Positions 7,804 through 28,200 of a stretch of 64,000 nt of DNA are shown piece after piece; the first letter of the stretch is position 1, and every line of letters starts with the position of its first letter. Below the pieces are notes generated by a model that was given only the letters and a program-made list of their open reading frames with translations, had not been told where the DNA came from and made no database searches. Made by a program: the position numbers and the translations under genes. Source of the DNA: Trichosphaerium sp. ATCC 40318 (taxonomy: Eukaryota > Protista > Tubulinea). The DNA lies in contig JALMLS010000255.1 of assembly GCA_038496445.1 (NCBI GenBank), positions 558,001-622,000 of the forward strand, read 5' to 3'.

Positions 7804-10632
7804 ATGGCCACACCACTGTCTCCTTTCTCTCCTCTTTCGCCAATGGCACCTTTAGGGCCTATGGCTCCGGTAGCTCCTTTCGTTCCTATGGTGCCAACCA
7901 TGCCTACATCCCCTGGAAGAATTACCAGCTATACAGTTGTGGTAGTGCTTGGCGCGCTAGCAGCTCTATTTACGGTACTACTCAGTCATTTTTCTCAAAA
8001 TCTGTCTACGCACAAAAAAAGCAAGCAATAAAAAATACTAACTTACGTCTTTTTGTTTAGGCTTACGGTATTGGTGCTAATGACGTACGTTTTTTTGCTA
8101 TGTGACCATCATTTTTTTTTGATTGTTTGAAAAACTCGTTTCACAAAAAAAGTACCCAAGTCTTATATACCCTCTAGGTTGCAAATGCTGTACGTGACTG
8201 ACGCTTATGCGTGAATTACACTTGTACGAAACTTATAGGCCTAGTTTGCGACTTCTGTCGGCGCAAAAGTTCTTACGATGCGTCAAGCTATTGCAATAGC
8301 CTCTGTCTTTGAATTGGCTGGCGCTGTATTGCTTGGTTCTCATGTAACAGGTATTTCAAGGTTTTCTTTTTTATTGTCTTCACCTTTGAACGCACTCACG
8401 TGAGGTTTCATTGTAGATACTATCCGTAAAGGAATTGTCAATATCGATGTCTATCAAAACGACCCCGAAGCTCTCATGCTTGGTATGCTTTGCGCTTTGA
8501 TTGCTGCTGGTACTTGGCTTATTATTGCAACGTTCCTCAAGGTACTTCAACTTCGCTACAAAGTGCTTTTCGAAACGTTAAAAAAAATCAGTTTTCGGGT
8601 TTTTCCCGCGTAGATTTTCTTCTCGTTTTTTTTTCGTTTTGCGTTCTCGTGTTTACGATTTTTTTTTCGAAACTAGGCTCCTGTATCGACAACACACAGT
8701 ATTGTTGGAGCTATTGTTGGCTTTTCCCTCGTATACTCTCCGTCTAAAGGAGTCGGTTGGAAGGACATTGGATTCGTTGCACTATCTTGGTTGACAAGTC
8801 CGGTATGCTTACAAAACCACTGTTTTTGAAGTTCTTACTTTATTTAGATAATTTCAGGAATACTGGCGGTTCTTTTATTTTGGACTATTCGCTATTTTAT
8901 TCTCCGTCATAAATATCCGGTCAAACGTGGTCTTTTCTTCTTACCTTTCTTGTATGGACTTATGATGCTTATACTTTGTTTCTTTATCATATACAAAGGT
9001 ACGTATAGATTGATTGCGTTATCAAGATGAGTGAAAAAAAACAAGCTTTTTTTCTGACTTTTTTTGTTAGGTAGTCCGGCTTTGAAGCTCAACAAGTTGT
9101 TTTCTTGGTGGCAAGCTGTTCTTATATCCATCGGTATTGGTATACTCACAGTAGTTATCATGCGCTTCTTGATATTGCCATACATTGAGAAGTGGATTAA
9201 AAAAGTAGAAAAAGGTACGATCGTTCTTTTTTTTCAATTTTTTTTCCCGGTATAGACTGTTCACTAACGTGTTATTTATAGAAAAGGAAGACGGATCATA
9301 CTACACAAAAGACAGAACTTTCTGGGATAAAGTATGGGGTAAATACCCACCAACGCTCGAGGATAAAAAGAAGGACGAAGAAGCAAAGAAGAAACTTGAA
9401 GAGAGCCAGAAAAAAAAGAACAAGACAAACAAAGACGATACTGTAGTAAACATGACTACAACGAAGAATAGTAGTGAATCTAAAGGAACAAGTACTGGCG
9501 CTAGTACAGATAATGCAGCTGATAATGACTCCGATATTGAGTCACAAATGGACGCTGGAGATGACGCCATTGTTGACGAGAGCTCCGAAGATGAAGATTC
9601 TGATGCTACAGAAGTAGATGAATCATCTGCAGATGAAGAAAGTGATCATGATGACAATGATGACGATGATGACAATGACGAGGCTGATGAAGAAAGCGAA
9701 AGCGATGATGATAGCAATGAACTTGAAACACAGTCAAACGATCAAATGAGTTCTACAAAGAAAGGAAAGAAAGGAAAGAAACAAAAAAAGAGAACAAAAG
9801 CACAGATTAGACGTGATAAAATCCATGAAGAGGCCGAGAAGTTTGATGAAGGTGCTGAACAGCTCTTCTCGTTTCTACAAATTTTCACTGCCACACTTGA
9901 TTCATTCGCACATGGAGCAAACGATGTACGTCCACCTCAAGCACTAAAGCCATATTTCACCATTTTTTTTTCTCACTTTTTTCTTTCTTTCAGGTTGCAA
10001 ACTCTATCGCACCTTTTGCTGCTATTTGGGCTATTTACACTTCTGGAGAAGTAACAGAGAAAGCAGATGTAGCTTGGTGGATACTTATTATGGGTGGTGT
10101 TGGTATTGTCATTGGTCTTGCAACACTTGGCTATAAAATTATTAAAGGTTCGTATATTCCTCTAGACGCTTAAAGCGTAGACTACCTTGCATTAAAAAAA
10201 AATCATAATTCGTATTCGAACCAACCATCTTTTGTGGAATGTTCATGTTATTAGTTCTTCCGCTTTTTTTACTTTCGTTTGACTTATTTGTTTCTTTAAG
10301 CCGTTGGTGATGAACTAGCTAAAGTCACTCCATCACGTGGTTTCACCATGGAAATTGGTCCTATTGTTACTGTTATTTTAGCTTCGCGCGTTGGTATGCC
10401 TGTATCTACAACACATTGTCAAGTACGCATTTGTCTATATTAAAAAGTAATTTTTTGTCTTACATTTTTTCTCCAGGTTGGCGCTGTTACAGCTGTTGGT
10501 TTGCTTGAAGGTGCAGGTGGAATAGATTGGCGTCTATTGGGTAAAATAGTTTTCTCATGGGTAGTAACATTGCCAGTTTCTGGCGGTATTTCTGCTGCTC
10601 TCTTTGCTATTATACGAGCAATCATAAAGTGA
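7804..10632 (+). CDS. Inorganic phosphate transporter (PiT/SLC20/PHO89 family) with a long acidic loop
   Basis: Two PiT signatures, AYGIGAND|VANA and DSFAHGAND|VANS, plus TPSRGF and PVSTTH motifs. Asp/Glu-rich insert at about 9480-9730. Confidence 0.93.
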
Positions 10633-20443: not shown

Positions 20444-22519
20444 TCACATCAAGTCACCCACAACTTGTACGTCTATGACTTCTCCATTGACATAAATACG
20501 CTTTATGTGTTTACGTCCGCTTTCATGCCACTGTGTTGATTCACCGTTGAGTACACCATCAATGTAATTGAATTGACATTGGATTTTACCATTTTGATGC
20601 CATTGCTGGTAGTATCCGTCTTTATACCCATCAATACACGTGTAATTTTCGTCTAGCGCTCCGTTCTCATACCATGTCTCAACAGTACCATTTGATTTTC
20701 CGTTCTTGTACATACACCGTAACTTGAGCTGTCCGTTGTTGTACCACTGTCTATACTTATTGGTCATCTTTCCATTGGTGTACACGCATTCTATTTCGAT
20801 TTGTCCAGCTTCATACCATTGTCTAAACCTTCCGTTCATCTTGCCGTTGACGTACATGCACTCTGTTTTAAGTTGTCCGTTTAAGTACCACTCTTCAAAC
20901 AAACCATTGATGTTGCTATTAAGGTACAAACATCTCTTTTTGAGTGTTCCATTTTCATACCACTCCTGAGACTTTCCATTGCCAGTATTATAATGTGCCT
21001 TTAGGTGGCCATTGTAGTACCATCTCATGACCTCGCCAACCTCAACGCCATCAACATGGTAAGAAAGCTCTCTCATTTGCCCGTTCTCATACCATTCTAT
21101 ACAGTCACCATTCTTCATTCCATCCATTCTGTGAAAGTGTAGTTCAAGCTTCCCATTTTCATACCACATCTTATGCTCACCTTCTTCGTTACCATCTTTA
21201 AAGAAGCAAAGCTCTTTGACTGTTCCATCAGCGTACATATACGAATACGCTCCATCCAACTTGTCATCCTTGTAAATACACTGTTCCTCAAGTGTTCCGT
21301 CTTCATACCACCTTTTGGCAACGCCATTTTTTTTACCATGCTTGTAAATAGCACTTTCTTGGATTCTTCCATTATCATACCATCTCCTGCACTCTCCTTC
21401 AAACTTGTCGTTATAGCTTATATAGAAATGTCGCTTTTTTCCATTCTCAAACCACGTTTTCCGGAGGCCATGCACATTACCGTCCTTGTAAACACATTGT
21501 TCCTTTCTTTCTCCGTTCAGATGCCACTCTTTGTACTCTCCATTTTTTTCACCAGCAATGTAATAGCCCTCTATTTCAGGAGCTCTATCGTTATACCACA
21601 AAGTACAGTGACCGTTTCGTTTGCCGTCAACCCACATGCTTGTTTCTCTAAGTGCGCCATCTTTACACCACCTCTTCATCTCACCTTCTTTGATACCATC
21701 GCTGTAACAGCATTGCACTTTGACTTGTCCGTCTTCATACCATTTTATACACTTGCCCGTCTTATTACCCTTCTCGTAAGTGCACCGTTTTTTGCATTGT
21801 CCGTTCTTATACCACTCTTTGTAGTCGCCATGTCTTTGATTTTCAACATAAGCACAATCAAGTTCACATTGTCCGCTCTGATACCACTTTTTAGCCTTCC
21901 CGTTTTGTTTGCCGTCAGCCCACAAACTGTATTCTTCAGGCTTTCCATTCTGAAACCATTTCTTACACTCTCCATATAGCTTGTTGTCAATGCTTGTGTA
22001 ATCAAGCCGTGGTTTTCCATTACCATACCACCTCTTGCACATTCCGTGTATCTTGCCTGCTTTGAACATGGACTGCTCTTTCGTTACTCCATTCTTGTAC
22101 CACTCGGAACACTCTCCGTTCTTCTTGTCATCTTTGTAAATGCGATGTTCCGCAAGTTGTCCATTCTCATGCCACTTTTTATATTCACCGTTCTTCTTGT
22201 TGTCAATGAAATAACAGTGCACATCGAGTTTGCCGTTCTCGCGCCATTGTTTAAAAACACCATTCTTCTTTCCATCAATCAACAAATACTTAGAACGTAT
22301 ATTGCCACTGTTGTACCAGACCGTCCACATTCCGTGCTTATCAAGGTTTTCATTGTAGTGCGTGCTGATTGCAGCTCGCTTAGATAGCGTATGAAACTTC
22401 TTAAAAGTTTCGTCATTGAAAGAGCACAAATAACGTTGAATATCTCTTGGCAGGTCTAGTAACTCTGTGGGAGGAGCAATGACAATAGGTTGGTATTGTC
22501 CAGGCTTGTTTGTAGTCAT
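20444..22519 (-). CDS. Intronless F-box-like + MORN-variant (YwqK-like) repeat protein, 691 aa
   Basis: Single ORF. N-terminal LLDLPRDIQRYL, then roughly 25 repeats of about 24 aa (GxxxxWYxNGxxxxxxxYxxGKxx). Confidence 0.9.
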   Translation of the reverse strand: MTTNKPGQYQPIVIAPPTELLDLPRDIQRYLCSFNDETFKKFHTLSKRAAISTHYNENLDKHGMWTVWYNSGNIRSKYLLIDGKKNGVFKQWRENGKLDVHCYFIDNKKNGEYKKWHENGQLAEHRIYKDDKKNGECSEWYKNGVTKEQSMFKAGKIHGMCKRWYGNGKPRLDYTSIDNKLYGECKKWFQNGKPEEYSLWADGKQNGKAKKWYQSGQCELDCAYVENQRHGDYKEWYKNGQCKKRCTYEKGNKTGKCIKWYEDGQVKVQCCYSDGIKEGEMKRWCKDGALRETSMWVDGKRNGHCTLWYNDRAPEIEGYYIAGEKNGEYKEWHLNGERKEQCVYKDGNVHGLRKTWFENGKKRHFYISYNDKFEGECRRWYDNGRIQESAIYKHGKKNGVAKRWYEDGTLEEQCIYKDDKLDGAYSYMYADGTVKELCFFKDGNEEGEHKMWYENGKLELHFHRMDGMKNGDCIEWYENGQMRELSYHVDGVEVGEVMRWYYNGHLKAHYNTGNGKSQEWYENGTLKKRCLYLNSNINGLFEEWYLNGQLKTECMYVNGKMNGRFRQWYEAGQIEIECVYTNGKMTNKYRQWYNNGQLKLRCMYKNGKSNGTVETWYENGALDENYTCIDGYKDGYYQQWHQNGKIQCQFNYIDGVLNGESTQWHESGRKHIKRIYVNGEVIDVQVVGDLM

Positions 22520-23068
22520 TATTGGTACTGTTGTCTAAAAAGTACGTCAAAAAAAAGCTGTTCAGTGAAAAAGAAGACAAGAACAAATGAAAACGGGTTG
22601 ATTGATAGTGCTGAATTTCAATATTGATTTAAAGTTGATGTTAATTGTTTTTCGTGCACTTGTGTTGTCTGATGTGTATACTTGAAGTCCAGAAACCTTT
22701 TTGCGAGCTCTTTCAAGAGCAATACACTAAACCACTTGACGTACGTTGTTTTGTTATAATAGTAGAGTTAAACGGTGATTCGTCAAGTATCACCAGCTGT
22801 TGCACAAGTAGTTTGGTATCTGGAAATTAAAAATCACTCAACAAAATCCTTTAAGTAAGTACTGTCACTTAACCGCACAAAAAAACAGTGAAAACATTCC
22901 CCCGCAAGTTTCCTTTGGTACTGCTAGTATAATGGTAGAGTCTCATTGACAGCGTACTGTTCAAATTGGCCCTGGGATCAATAATAATAGTTTGGGAAAT
23001 TGTTTATTTTTCAAATTTTTTTTATCTTTACTGACTTTATGTGCTTTCTTTTTTATTTGTACAACTTA

Positions 23069-24449
23069 TTATTTGTATCTATTATATCCTCCTTGTTTCC
23101 TTGCTGGAGCCGATATCTTCTTCAATGGGTGCATTTTAAGCCCAATCATTTCCAAATACTTCGTTGTTTGAGGTTGAACTTTAAAAACATATTCTTTGCC
23201 TTCACCGCCATCTCCACCAGTTGTCTTTGGTCTGACAGTCATAACAAAAGGCTCAGTGATAGCATAAGTACCTTTTTTCGCCAGAACATTCTCTTTCACC
23301 CACCTAGAGTTTTCCTCAAGAAGGGCTTTCTTCAATTGTTTTGGGAATCTTGGATTTGCATTTTCACGCAAAGGAAACAGCTTGTGCGTAGCACGTACAA
23401 TGGATAACCACTCTTCGTCATAATGTAATACCTTAGGTAAATTTGGTACCGAAGGATATACTTGAATAACCTTACAGAAGCGTCGGTTAGGTACAGGCTT
23501 ATCAAGCGCCAAAAATTTTGTTTCTTTGACAGGTTCATCATCATTTGATTTGGGTGTTTGCCTTTGCCCTTTTCTACCCCTTACAGGTCTCTTTGTATGC
23601 TTCACTGTAGCTTCAAAGTGAACATGCATATGACCAGAACACCATCACGTTGGTTTAAGGTCTTTTAAGAGTTTCAGGTACCCACGAAATCCAAGAGCGT
23701 CTTGTTTGTTTGCATCTTTTTCAAACCATGGTTTTGTACGAAATAGCTTCTCAGCGTCACCGTAGGTGAAGATACTACCCGGCCAGTCGTGTGACATTAT
23801 AATATCAAGATGACCACGTACTTGAGACAGCTTAAAAAGCTCATACTGCCGAACATGGAAAGCGCTTTTTTTTTCTGCAAAAGTGTACGGTGGAAGCTCA
23901 AAATGGCCTTTCTGGAAGTCGTAACCCTTCCAAATACCGCTAAACCCTCCAATACGCACTCCTCCAAAGTTTAGAACGCCTGAATAGCCCATGAAATAAA
24001 TATTAGGCGCAGCGTATCCTCCATAGTAGATTTCGCGCAAGTGGTTGCTTGCCTAGCGAAAGTAAGCATTTGTGATGATTTTGGACGCTTTTTAACGTAC
24101 TTCATGGTTGCCACCGATAAAAACAGTTGGAATAGGCGCTACAAGTTCTCCGTTGTAGTATTTGTAGAAATCTTTAAAGATGTGGTATTTTGCTGGTCCT
24201 GAAAGACATTCTAGGTCGTAATCGCATCGAACAGCCTCAAAATCGCCACAACAAAGGACGAGATCAACTTTGTAATCATTTTGCTAATTACTTGTTGTAA
24301 GGTAAAGGTAACATGCTTATATGCGTTCAAACCTCCTCATAGTGCTTAACTTGCTCGTATATTCTATCTAACTGTCCATGAGAACAGCCAATAACAGCAA
24401 TATTGAGTGGTTCTGCTTTGGTTTCTTTTTCTTCCTCTTTAGGTTCCAT
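23069..24449 (-). CDS. DBR1: RNA lariat debranching enzyme, with an in-frame TGA at 23645-23647
   Basis: [28 protein letters not shown]|[64 protein letters not shown]. Two introns in the 5' part. Confidence 0.93.
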
Positions 24450-24579
24450 CGCAGCAGTTATTTGAGTAATTGAAACGAACGTCAATGCTACCATTCACCG
24501 AAGCAATTTACTTCGTCATCACCATTACCTAAATTTTCTTGTTTTCTGAACTCAAGCACAACACCGTGTATCCTTTCTT

Positions 24580-24830
24580 TGTCGTGTGCCACTATGACTC
24601 TTGCAACATACAAATGGAAGATCCAGATTTACGAAGAAAGGCATTTGAGTCTGGATCTTTGCTGTGGGCAGTGCAACATTTACTAAGCTCTGCTTCTCTG
24701 GACTATTTATTGTGTCCTTTCTATGGTGTAAAAGAAGCACCTTTGCCCCACGTGTTTGTTTACAACTTAACTTTATTATGGTCATCTCTTGAATGGTAAC
24801 AAAACAATTTGAGGCACGAGAAAATTCATG
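24580..24830 (+). ncRNA. Candidate structured RNA upstream of and antisense to DBR1
   Basis: 14-bp stem AAGATCCAGATTTA/TGAGTCTGGATCTT containing two G-U pairs, plus GTGGGCA/TGCCCCAC, TGCTTCT/AGAAGCA, GGAC/GTCC and ATGAC/GTCAT stems. Confidence 0.35.
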
Positions 24831-25217
24831 TGTTTTAATCTTGCTTACATAGCTTTTTTCAATTTTTAAAAATGAACTACTCAGCCAACACTTTATTGTT
24901 CTTTGGCTCACCATTATCGTAAAGCATATCATGCCAACCTAAAAGTAGTTAAAGGATGTAAATACGACACTAATGGAAACAGACTAAGCAAAGGCTTCAA
25001 CATGTCAAAAAGAATACATGGCTTGATTTGAAATCAATGGACAAGTTACGTAAATAGGTCGTATCTATTGCCTCGCTTAAATGATATCATCCTGCACGGA
25101 CTCAAATTGAATTTCTACTTGGTATTGTATTCTTACATGCGTGCGTTCGATGACGCGAAAGAGAAACGAAGGAAGAGTTATTGACTTCTTTTTTTTTGTA
25201 CAATTTGTTTTTTAAAA

Positions 25218-28200
25218 TTACGTTGTGTATGATAGCTGGTTTTTAAGTCTATGTGCTCGCTGGAGTTGAAAATTTTTCATTTGTTTCTTTATACTCTGTA
25301 GCCATGACTATATTATAAAGTCAGTTGATGTCATTAATAATAAAGAGAGGCGTGATTTCGAAAAAAAGTGAATTTGTTAGTTTTATACCTCTTTTGAGTC
25401 GTTTGACTCGCATTGTATAAGCATTGTAGAGCTTGACGTTAGTTCCATTATTTCGAATAAATTTACAGCAGATTTATCTATAAATTACTATGTCAGTTGA
25501 AAACCATAAAAAAGAAAAGTTGTAATCTCTAATTAACGAACCTTCTTTATCTGCACAGTTCACTACAGATATCTCTTTTAACATCCATTTCTTTTTCCAC
25601 ATGTATTTTTTGTTAAATTGCTATCGTGCGTATTAGTACAACCATTAATGGACAACGAAACGAGGAAAAAAATAAGAATAATTTTGCTTCATTGTTGTGT
25701 TTTTTTTGTTGCCTAAGCAGGAACTGTCGTGAAGATGAAAAAATTAATTTGTGTTATAAGTACGTTACGAAGCATCTTCTTTGAGCTTGGAATGAGTTTT
25801 CTCTTTGTTAGAACCAACAACATATCAGTAAATAAATACACTCGAATTTTTTTAAGTTTCTGCTCCAATACTTCACTCTGTTTTAATCATTTTTAGCATA
25901 CGTCTACCACATAACACTCAAAAGATTTTATATCCAAAAAAATATACACATACCGCATCACCCTCTTTTATCAACCTTCGGTTTCTTTGAACCAAATTAA
26001 GCTCTGATCCGTTATAAATGTTTAGTTGAAGATCTGCTAATTTTTTCATGCAAATCTCTGAGAAACTCTCCGCTTGTTCATTAACCTTATCAATAAATCT
26101 ATTCATAGTTTGTAAGTTAGCAAATGATAATATTATAGCTTATATCACATGTTTCAAAAACGCACGTGACAGCCTCGTCGATGAGTTTAATTGCTCTTCC
26201 AAGATTTGTATGTTCAGAATGAGATTGAGTAGTGTGTTGATGGAGTTGCTAAAAATCGATAAGCCTTTTGATGTTTAAAACTAATTGCGTTTATTATACC
26301 CGTAGTAGTAAGCTATATCTACCTATAACATAAATGCAGTTAGATTTTTTTCGAAGCATAATACATAATTACTAGTAAAACGCAAAGGGAAAACAAAACA
26401 AAACAATTGAAATCACTATTTTGTTAGCAAACAAGAAGCTTTTTTCTAATGCGTACATATTCGTTGTATCGGCTTTATAAGCATTGCTGAAAATTCCAGG
26501 TTTTTACATGCCGGATCTTGGAGGAAAGTCTAGAAAACACAAGGCATCAGACATGTTGTTTTGGCATAACATTAACTTACCGTCATGTATGTTTTAAATT
26601 CTCTGTTGCTCTGATACAAACTATCCGCCATTGCTTTTGATAATGTCTTCATACTACAATACTCTGTGTATACTTTCAAATAACCAGCCTACAAACAGAA
26701 TGCTTAGAGAAAGAGAAGAAAAAAACTACAAAAAAAACTAAACATACAAAATCAGAAAAAATGTCACCAACAACCATATACGCAAGTGACTTTACTGGTC
26801 CCCATTTCATGGCTGCTTCTTCATGTCTCATATTCAAAGGTTGGTATAGATGTACATTATTCGTGCGGGCAATAGCCTTCATGTTACACGTTAGCATAAG
26901 CCAGTCTCGAAGAAGAAAAGGTTAAAGATTACAAACCTTTATATTTCCAAACAACACTCTATGTTCTTCTTTAGATACAATACCTTGCTCAAGCATAGGG
27001 TTCATGAATAGCTGTATTAAAGTTATGTCCAAAAATCGTAAAAAATATTATTTTCAAAAAACCACGTGCGTCAATGAGTGTATTCAGGTCATCTTTGTAG
27101 TCGCTTTCTGTTTTCATAATTTCTGCCATTATATTCCCTTCAAAAATATTAATCTGTGATGCGGTTACAAGTATTTACCTCTCTTGGCGCTGTGGTGTGG
27201 TAAAGCAGGTGAATTCTGATCATTTGCACCATCCATAAGTTTAGATACGTGCTGTAAAGAAAGAGAAGTTAAAAACAATTGAAAAACTGATTCCGCTTTT
27301 TCGAAAGAAAAAAAAAACACAAAACAACACAAAAATCACGCTTTCTTTCGGAAGTAATTTTACGAAATGATTCATTGTGTTGTTTAGAAATTATTTCATA
27401 TAATAGTGTACCATTGATTGTGCGCGTTTATGATTTTTTCCAAATCCGGTTGACAAATTTCGATTAAGGTTAACAGGTGGAGTGGACTCAACAAAACCGA
27501 TTCTTGTTCTTCTATCATAAAGAGATGACTCTGATGCTGATTTTTCATGTTCTCTCGTCTTAAATGGAGTAGGTGGAGATGAAGGCGGTGTATATTTCGG
27601 CGGTGAAGAGTGTAGAGAAGTTCCTAAACGTCTGTTCACTTTTGGCTTGGGAGGGACTTTAGGTGGAGGACTTGGTTTACTCCTCCTCAGAATTCTATTT
27701 GGAGGAGCAGGTGTTGAGACTGCACGCTTTCCTCTCAGCTTTCTACAATAAATTAAGAAAATGTATTGAACACAAAAGGAAGTAAGTACAGTCGAAGCGT
27801 AATGAAAAATACATAAAAAAAATCGAGTGAACTTCACGTGTTGTTTTTACTGCAAATAAACCTTGTGGGGTCGCATAGATTTTTTTTTTAAGTGTTCCTA
27901 AGGCAAACACACAATCTTACACGTAGAAATATTTATGTGTTCAAATCAGATCACTCTTATAAGATTCAATTTCGTGGCTCTGAATTTTTGTTCTTTTTGG
28001 TTTTTTTTTTTGAAAATCACGTGATCTTACCTTGTTGCTGGAGAAAGACGATGTATTGGCGGTTGTTTTGGTTTCGGTGGATCAATTAAAGGCTTTTTCG
28101 GCGCATGGCCGTTTTCATGGTGCTCCGACAATGATGTCCCAGGGTTTAATTGCTTAAGTAATGAAGCTACATCACTACGGAGCTCCGAAAGAACGCGTGA

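Follow-up and report, generated by a model that had tools for sequence, protein, structure and literature searches.

An in-frame TGA in the catalytic domain of a DBR1 gene: probably a recent nonsense mutation rather than a recoding switch

Structure of the DBR1 gene and of its transcript

The window analysed here is a single stretch of 64 kb of DNA, the minus strand of which carries, from 24449 to 23069, a gene that its sequence identifies as DBR1, encoding the RNA lariat debranching enzyme. The gene consists of three exons and is interrupted by a TGA codon in the third. Exon borders were read from the sequence and then checked against spliced RNA contigs of organism A, which come from three runs (X1-X3) of one sample and from which both introns are removed. 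A further contig, from organism B, provides a comparison at the TGA codon. The features of the locus are the following:

24450..24467, minus strand: 5' UTR, 18 nt; the cDNA 5' end is at 24467
24333..24449, minus strand: exon 1, 39 codons, with the ATG at 24449..24447 and the GCSHG metal-binding motif
24284..24332, minus strand: intron 1, 49 nt, GT..AG; joint 24283/24333 in an X2 contig, CT..AC on the plus strand
24101..24283, minus strand: exon 2, 61 codons, with the GDFE and GGNHE motifs; 75% identical to Balamuthia DBR1
24053..24100, minus strand: intron 2, 48 nt, GT..AG; joint 24051/24100 (cut +1) in X1 and X2 contigs
23648..24052, minus strand: exon 3 before the stop, 135 codons, with the SHDWP motif; last residues LKDLKPT
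23645..23647, minus strand: in-frame TGA, codon 236; unchanged in the X1-X3 RNA contigs, TGG (Trp) in organism B
23072..23644, minus strand: exon 3 after the stop, 191 codons, open and undamaged, with WCSGHMH (HxH motif) and the C-terminal domain
23069..23071, minus strand: natural stop TAA, with a second TAA directly after it
23033..23068, minus strand: 3' UTR, 36 nt to the end of the RNA contig (X1 record 1 stops at 23033, which does not prove a poly(A) site)

The conceptual product comprises 235 residues, a stop, 191 further residues, and then TAA TAA. Exon 1 aligns with the N-terminus of Balamuthia DBR1, and one X2 contig (record 4) corresponds to 24333-24467 and is joined to exon 2 by splicing. 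Its loose end beyond 24467 is the reverse complement of an oligo tail that we take to be that of a template-switching (SMART-type) oligo. This tail puts the 5' terminus of the cDNA 18 nt upstream of the ATG, indicates that the runs are cDNA/RNA, and suggests that X1-X3 are low-input SMART-type transcriptomes.

Identity of the gene and the residue at the TGA site

The pieces before and after the stop were searched separately, not as one read-through protein. The piece after the stop matches the DBR1 C-terminal domain of Pfam (PF05011; E 1.8e-26, 93.7 bits against a cut-off of 26) over profile positions 2-136 of 138, while the piece before it matches chains of the Entamoeba Dbr1 crystal structure (E about 1e-18). 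Five metallophosphoesterase motifs are intact in the translated exons, four before the stop (GCSHG, GDFE, GGNHE, and SHDWP) and one after it (GHMH). The gene shares with the Dbr1/DBR1 family the common motif set GCxHG (with Cys in motif I), GD, GNHE, SHDWP, and GHxH, together with PF05011. It cannot be read as one uninterrupted frame for full-length DBR1, as TGA stands at codon 236 in both DNA and RNA.

With the C-terminal piece as query, 1.84 billion representative proteins yielded 408 homologues at E<=0.001, none of them more than 45% identical to it; among solved structures, this piece alone matched none by sequence. The nearest named homologue is a protein of Balamuthia mandrillaris (KAL6069947.1, P0037), which suggests, from sequence similarity, an amoebozoan source for the gene. 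The N half (235 aa) is 65% identical to Balamuthia DBR1 over 222 aligned residues, and the C half about 30-35%. When the Balamuthia protein was used as a query against 5.8 billion proteins, no protein exceeded about 65% identity to the N half. The C-terminal half (23072-23644, minus strand) is unusually divergent, with at most about 37% identity to any retrieved homologue, and a basic insert of 12 residues follows immediately after the HxH motif.

The stop lies at 23647..23645, one codon before W-C-S-G-H-M-H: at 23630-23660 the minus strand reads ctt aaa cca acg TGA tgg tgt tct ggt cat atg cat, that is, LKPT, a stop, and WCSGHMH. The sequence, the motifs, and the PF05011 and Entamoeba Dbr1 matches all confirm the original prediction of an in-frame UGA at this place in DBR1. 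The same prediction held that the frame goes on for about 190 residues and that the stop precedes the HxH motif; both statements agree with the 191 open codons, which run to TAA and contain the PF05011 match, and with GHMH being read after the TGA.

Exactly one column separates the two DBR1 pieces in our alignment (A1), where Balamuthia and one other homologue have W and the rest R or F. Across this site, the Balamuthia protein reads LKPTWWLSGHMH. Its local motif LKPT-W-W.SGHMH matches that of the gene studied here, the difference being that codon 236 is a stop here and Trp there. More broadly, all retrieved homologues have a sense residue at the site, and among 125 of them we counted Y in 58, W in 21, F in 14, R in 12, H in 8, and other residues in 12. 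W is thus the second commonest residue, at a position that is mostly aromatic and varies. The expectation that DBR1 orthologs carry an aromatic residue here holds as a tendency (Y, W, or F in 93 of the 125) but not as a strict rule, given the homologues with R, H, or other residues.

The stop in RNA

The contigs of the three organism A runs jointly cover 23033-24467 without a single difference from the DNA and with both introns out, and TGA is present in contigs of every run; such contigs drop rare variants, so that minor alleles and low-level editing are invisible in them. DBR1 mRNA bearing the TGA is produced and correctly spliced in organism A, the depth of RNA contigs being no measure of expression. 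We considered a cryptic intron spanning the TGA and rejected it, since the RNA contigs are continuous there in three runs. The claim that no intron can remove the UGA is borne out by these same unspliced contigs.

The transcripts bear directly on the mundane alternative offered by the original prediction, namely an assembly or sequencing error with TGG as the true codon. A change of one base would remove the stop, and the relative described below has TGG. However, the organism A contigs are spliced cDNA and are hence independent of the DNA assembly, which excludes an assembly error: three RNA contig sets carry the TGA, with no mismatch, with both splice joints, and with the template-switch oligo tail. 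This explanation is refuted, and we leave it next to no probability.

RNA editing of UGA to UGG, of the A-to-I or another type, fares no better. The third base of the codon would have to change from A to G, but the contigs of the three runs have A there. High-level A-to-I editing is thereby excluded, and the proposed check of RNA at 23645 returned, in these contigs, TGA as in DNA, and no TGG. Moreover, ADAR-type mRNA editing is known as an animal trait, whereas the nearest homologue of the gene is amoebozoan. Editing is, in our view, scarcely credible.

A loss made harmless, either by a second intact DBR1 copy or by a minority TGG allele in a polyploid genome, would be compatible with a nonsense mutation at this locus. 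Contigs that drop rare variants could hide such an allele, and the DNA searched was this one window. Two observations weigh weakly on the other side: no diverged DBR1-like contig was found at 80% likeness in the three transcriptomes, and no paralogue-like protein closer than 65% identity was found in two protein collections. We regard a harmless loss of this kind as unlikely.

The genetic code in the window

Reading UGA as Trp, either throughout the organism's genes or in certain contexts, would make all three of the listed differences between organisms A and B synonymous. Codon usage in the window argues against this. The neighbouring MORN gene, which has 691 codons, contains 28 TGG and no in-frame TGA, and it ends in TGA. 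DBR1 itself has 6 TGG for 1 TGA. Furthermore, the window contains 27 pairs of open frames (each of at least 40 codons) joined by a single TGA, and only in DBR1 do the two frames form one conserved protein; the other pairs, judged by eye, look non-coding or like exon-intron boundaries, and only a phosphate-transporter case (about 8401) was worked through. TAA and TAG connect long open stretches in the window as commonly as TGA does. Nor do ORFs gain more length when TGA is read as sense than when TAA or TAG is, a statistic that is uninformative in this intron-rich DNA. The original prediction had judged global reassignment unlikely. The 28 TGG and the TGA terminator of the MORN gene, and the unique status of DBR1 among TGA-joined frames, support that judgement, and we consider UGA as Trp very improbable.

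The MORN gene (20444-22519, minus strand) is intronless and encodes 691 residues, nearly all of them in MORN-variant repeats (PF07661, E 1.6e-62). An ORF opposite it, at 21173-21979, is probably a by-product of repeat composition. As for the case worked through, the plus strand at 8245-8610 carries two exon-like stretches, presumably of a protein like PiT/PHO4-type phosphate transporters, and between them a short in-frame intron-like insert with a TGA. This insert provides an example of how in-frame TGAs arise from introns in the window.

A close relative with a tryptophan codon

A contig of organism B from another study (X4, 249 nt) covers 23506-23753 and differs from the window at 4 of 248 nt, being about 98% identical. 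Three of the four differences are listed, at 23561, 23645, and 23711. At 23645, organism B has C instead of T on the plus strand, which makes codon 236 TGG. The other two listed differences (AGG to AGA, Arg; GCA to GCG, Ala) are both synonymous. Since both organism B and the nearest named homologue have Trp at this site, TGG at codon 236 is likely to be the ancestral state, judging from these sequences, and TGA to be recent in the sequenced lineage. The original prediction had called for a check of relatives for the same UGA; the one closest at hand has TGG.

Search for recoding signals

The original prediction had favoured a regulated, site-specific recoding of the UGA, by readthrough, editing, or selenocysteine insertion, acting as a switch on lariat turnover. 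For selenocysteine, it had reported no clear SECIS in the 3' UTR. This absence is borne out: scanning 22300-24700 against Rfam at E<=10 yielded no SECIS, just a chance match to a bacterial sRNA, and none of the seven ATGA sites downstream of DBR1 lies in a SECIS-like hairpin. An Rfam scan of the whole window at gathering thresholds likewise gave no match, and ARAGORN found no tRNA in the window, hence no suppressor or Sec tRNA nearby. In addition, the transcript appears to end about 36 nt past the TAA, and the site is not a redox position. Homologues have Y, W, F, or R there and Cys in only 2 of 125. Selenocysteine insertion is the least credible of the explanations considered, with a probability close to nil.

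Functional readthrough under selection deserves more attention. According to this explanation, UGA would be decoded at a useful rate, mainly as Trp, and the output of full-length DBR1 would be throttled or regulated. In its favour, the gene is otherwise intact and is expressed, the ancestral residue is Trp, and Trp-tRNA is known to read UGA as a near-cognate (PMC4748822). The case resembles programmed UGA readthrough, as in retroviral gag-pol, mammalian MDH1, and other UGA-CUAG genes, in that an in-frame UGA is followed by a conserved functional frame, and in DBR1 too a near-cognate Trp-tRNA could insert a fitting residue. However, the known correlates of such readthrough are lacking. The stop context is ACG UGA UGG, with U at +4, and the leaky contexts UGA-C, UGA-CUAG, and CARYYA are absent. 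In yeast, UGA readthrough decreases in the order UGA-C > A > G > U, which makes UGA-U the least leaky of the four contexts, and no preference for Trp-tRNA is seen at UGA-U (PMC4748822). Shuffled versions of the 108 nt from the stop are on average at least as stable (mean of -21.1 kcal/mol) as the sequence itself (minimum free energy of -20.6 kcal/mol, z = 0.15), so that no stimulatory structure is apparent. Finally, unlike in the programmed cases, the nearest relative does not share the stop.

We therefore consider selected readthrough unlikely, although it is the best placed of the alternatives to a nonsense mutation. We give similarly little weight to the proposal that the UGA has been retained as a throttle on DBR1, with lariat turnover in an intron-dense amoeba tied to termination efficiency through low UGA-to-Trp readthrough, or to the alternative that the organism lives as a natural DBR1 null. 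As for the regulated switch as originally conceived, it finds no support in the TGG of organism B, the A in RNA, the UGA-U context, or the sequence downstream, which lacks structure.

A probable recent nonsense mutation in DBR1

Our preferred explanation, which we hold to be probable, is a recent TGG-to-TGA substitution private to the sequenced lineage, leaving DBR1 null or strongly hypomorphic, with no regulated recoding switch. A single-base change of the Trp codon TGG would have cut the frame of this single DBR1 gene short at codon 236 and left the rest of the gene intact. That this change is recent is indicated by the other motifs, all intact, and by the 191 downstream codons, which remain open and PF05011-like. 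A null allele had been mentioned originally as one of the mundane alternatives, and it is the one that the evidence favours, given TGG in organism B, TGA in RNA, and the lack of recoding signals.

The premature stop is in the last exon, with no exon junction downstream, and junction-dependent nonsense-mediated decay would thus have nothing to act on. This may explain why DBR1 mRNA was readily assembled from three transcriptomes. Normal termination would yield a fragment of 235 residues that keeps four metal-binding motifs but ends before both HxH histidines and before any of the C-terminal domain. In yeast Dbr1, the HxH histidines His231 and His233 are essential in vivo and in vitro (PMC5113202). 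As both are lost here, the truncated protein would be inactive, and by this comparison the fragment should be catalytically dead. We also considered reinitiation at an ATG located six codons after the stop and rejected it: the product would start at the Met of H-M-H, without the first essential histidine, so that the two fragments together would not reconstitute an active site, and would not rescue activity. Any residual debranching would then come from rare, unprogrammed misreading of the UGA, in which a near-cognate Trp-tRNA would restore the ancestral residue. The allele may thus be leaky rather than fully null.

Loss of DBR1 is tolerated elsewhere. The gene has been disrupted repeatedly in yeast, and 293T cells survive DBR1 knockout, their growth being impaired as it is in S. 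pombe depleted of Dbr1 (PMC11139901). More generally, survival is possible after DBR1 loss, with poor growth and lariat accumulation (PMC5113202, PMC11139901). Since cells can live without DBR1, its natural loss in a cultured or clonal lineage is plausible by analogy. The allele described here compares with known loss-of-function alleles of DBR1 (yeast dbr1 deletion, 293T knockout, and human hypomorphic disease alleles) in that loss of the HxH motif abolishes activity. Unlike them, it would have arisen naturally, in a free-living and intron-rich microbial eukaryote.

Several points speak against a null allele. A full null would be surprising, given the importance attributed to DBR1 in intron-rich eukaryotes. 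The gene shows no further decay, and the stop occupies the very codon at which misreading by Trp-tRNA would yield the wild-type protein again. Contigs might also conceal heterozygosity, a minority TGG allele, or low-level editing.

A recent nonsense allele would chiefly concern annotation: gene prediction in this genome will shorten DBR1 or miss it altogether, and comparative work might mistake the gene for a lost or a recoded one. The gene is interesting, but the kind of event that it shows is ordinary. Programmed recoding would be of more interest, but the evidence is against it. If the nonsense mutation is what we believe it to be, the strain is a naturally DBR1-deficient or strongly hypomorphic intron-rich eukaryote, for which the TGG-bearing relative serves as a built-in control, and the pair would be useful for studying lariat turnover and retrotransposon biology. 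A natural DBR1 null, if true, would provide a wild model of lariat accumulation.

Other transcripts and genes in the window

Upstream of DBR1, an X1 contig (1763 nt) lies on 25175-25309 and an X2 contig (1097 nt) on 25228-25309, and both continue into unlike sequence at 25309. The segment 25175-25309 probably belongs to a neighbouring gene, as an exon whose splicing partner lies beyond the stretch compared. At the edge of the window, the minus strand at 505-786 carries an exon encoding a catalytic loop of the PI3K/PI4K type (GIRDRHQDNILI).
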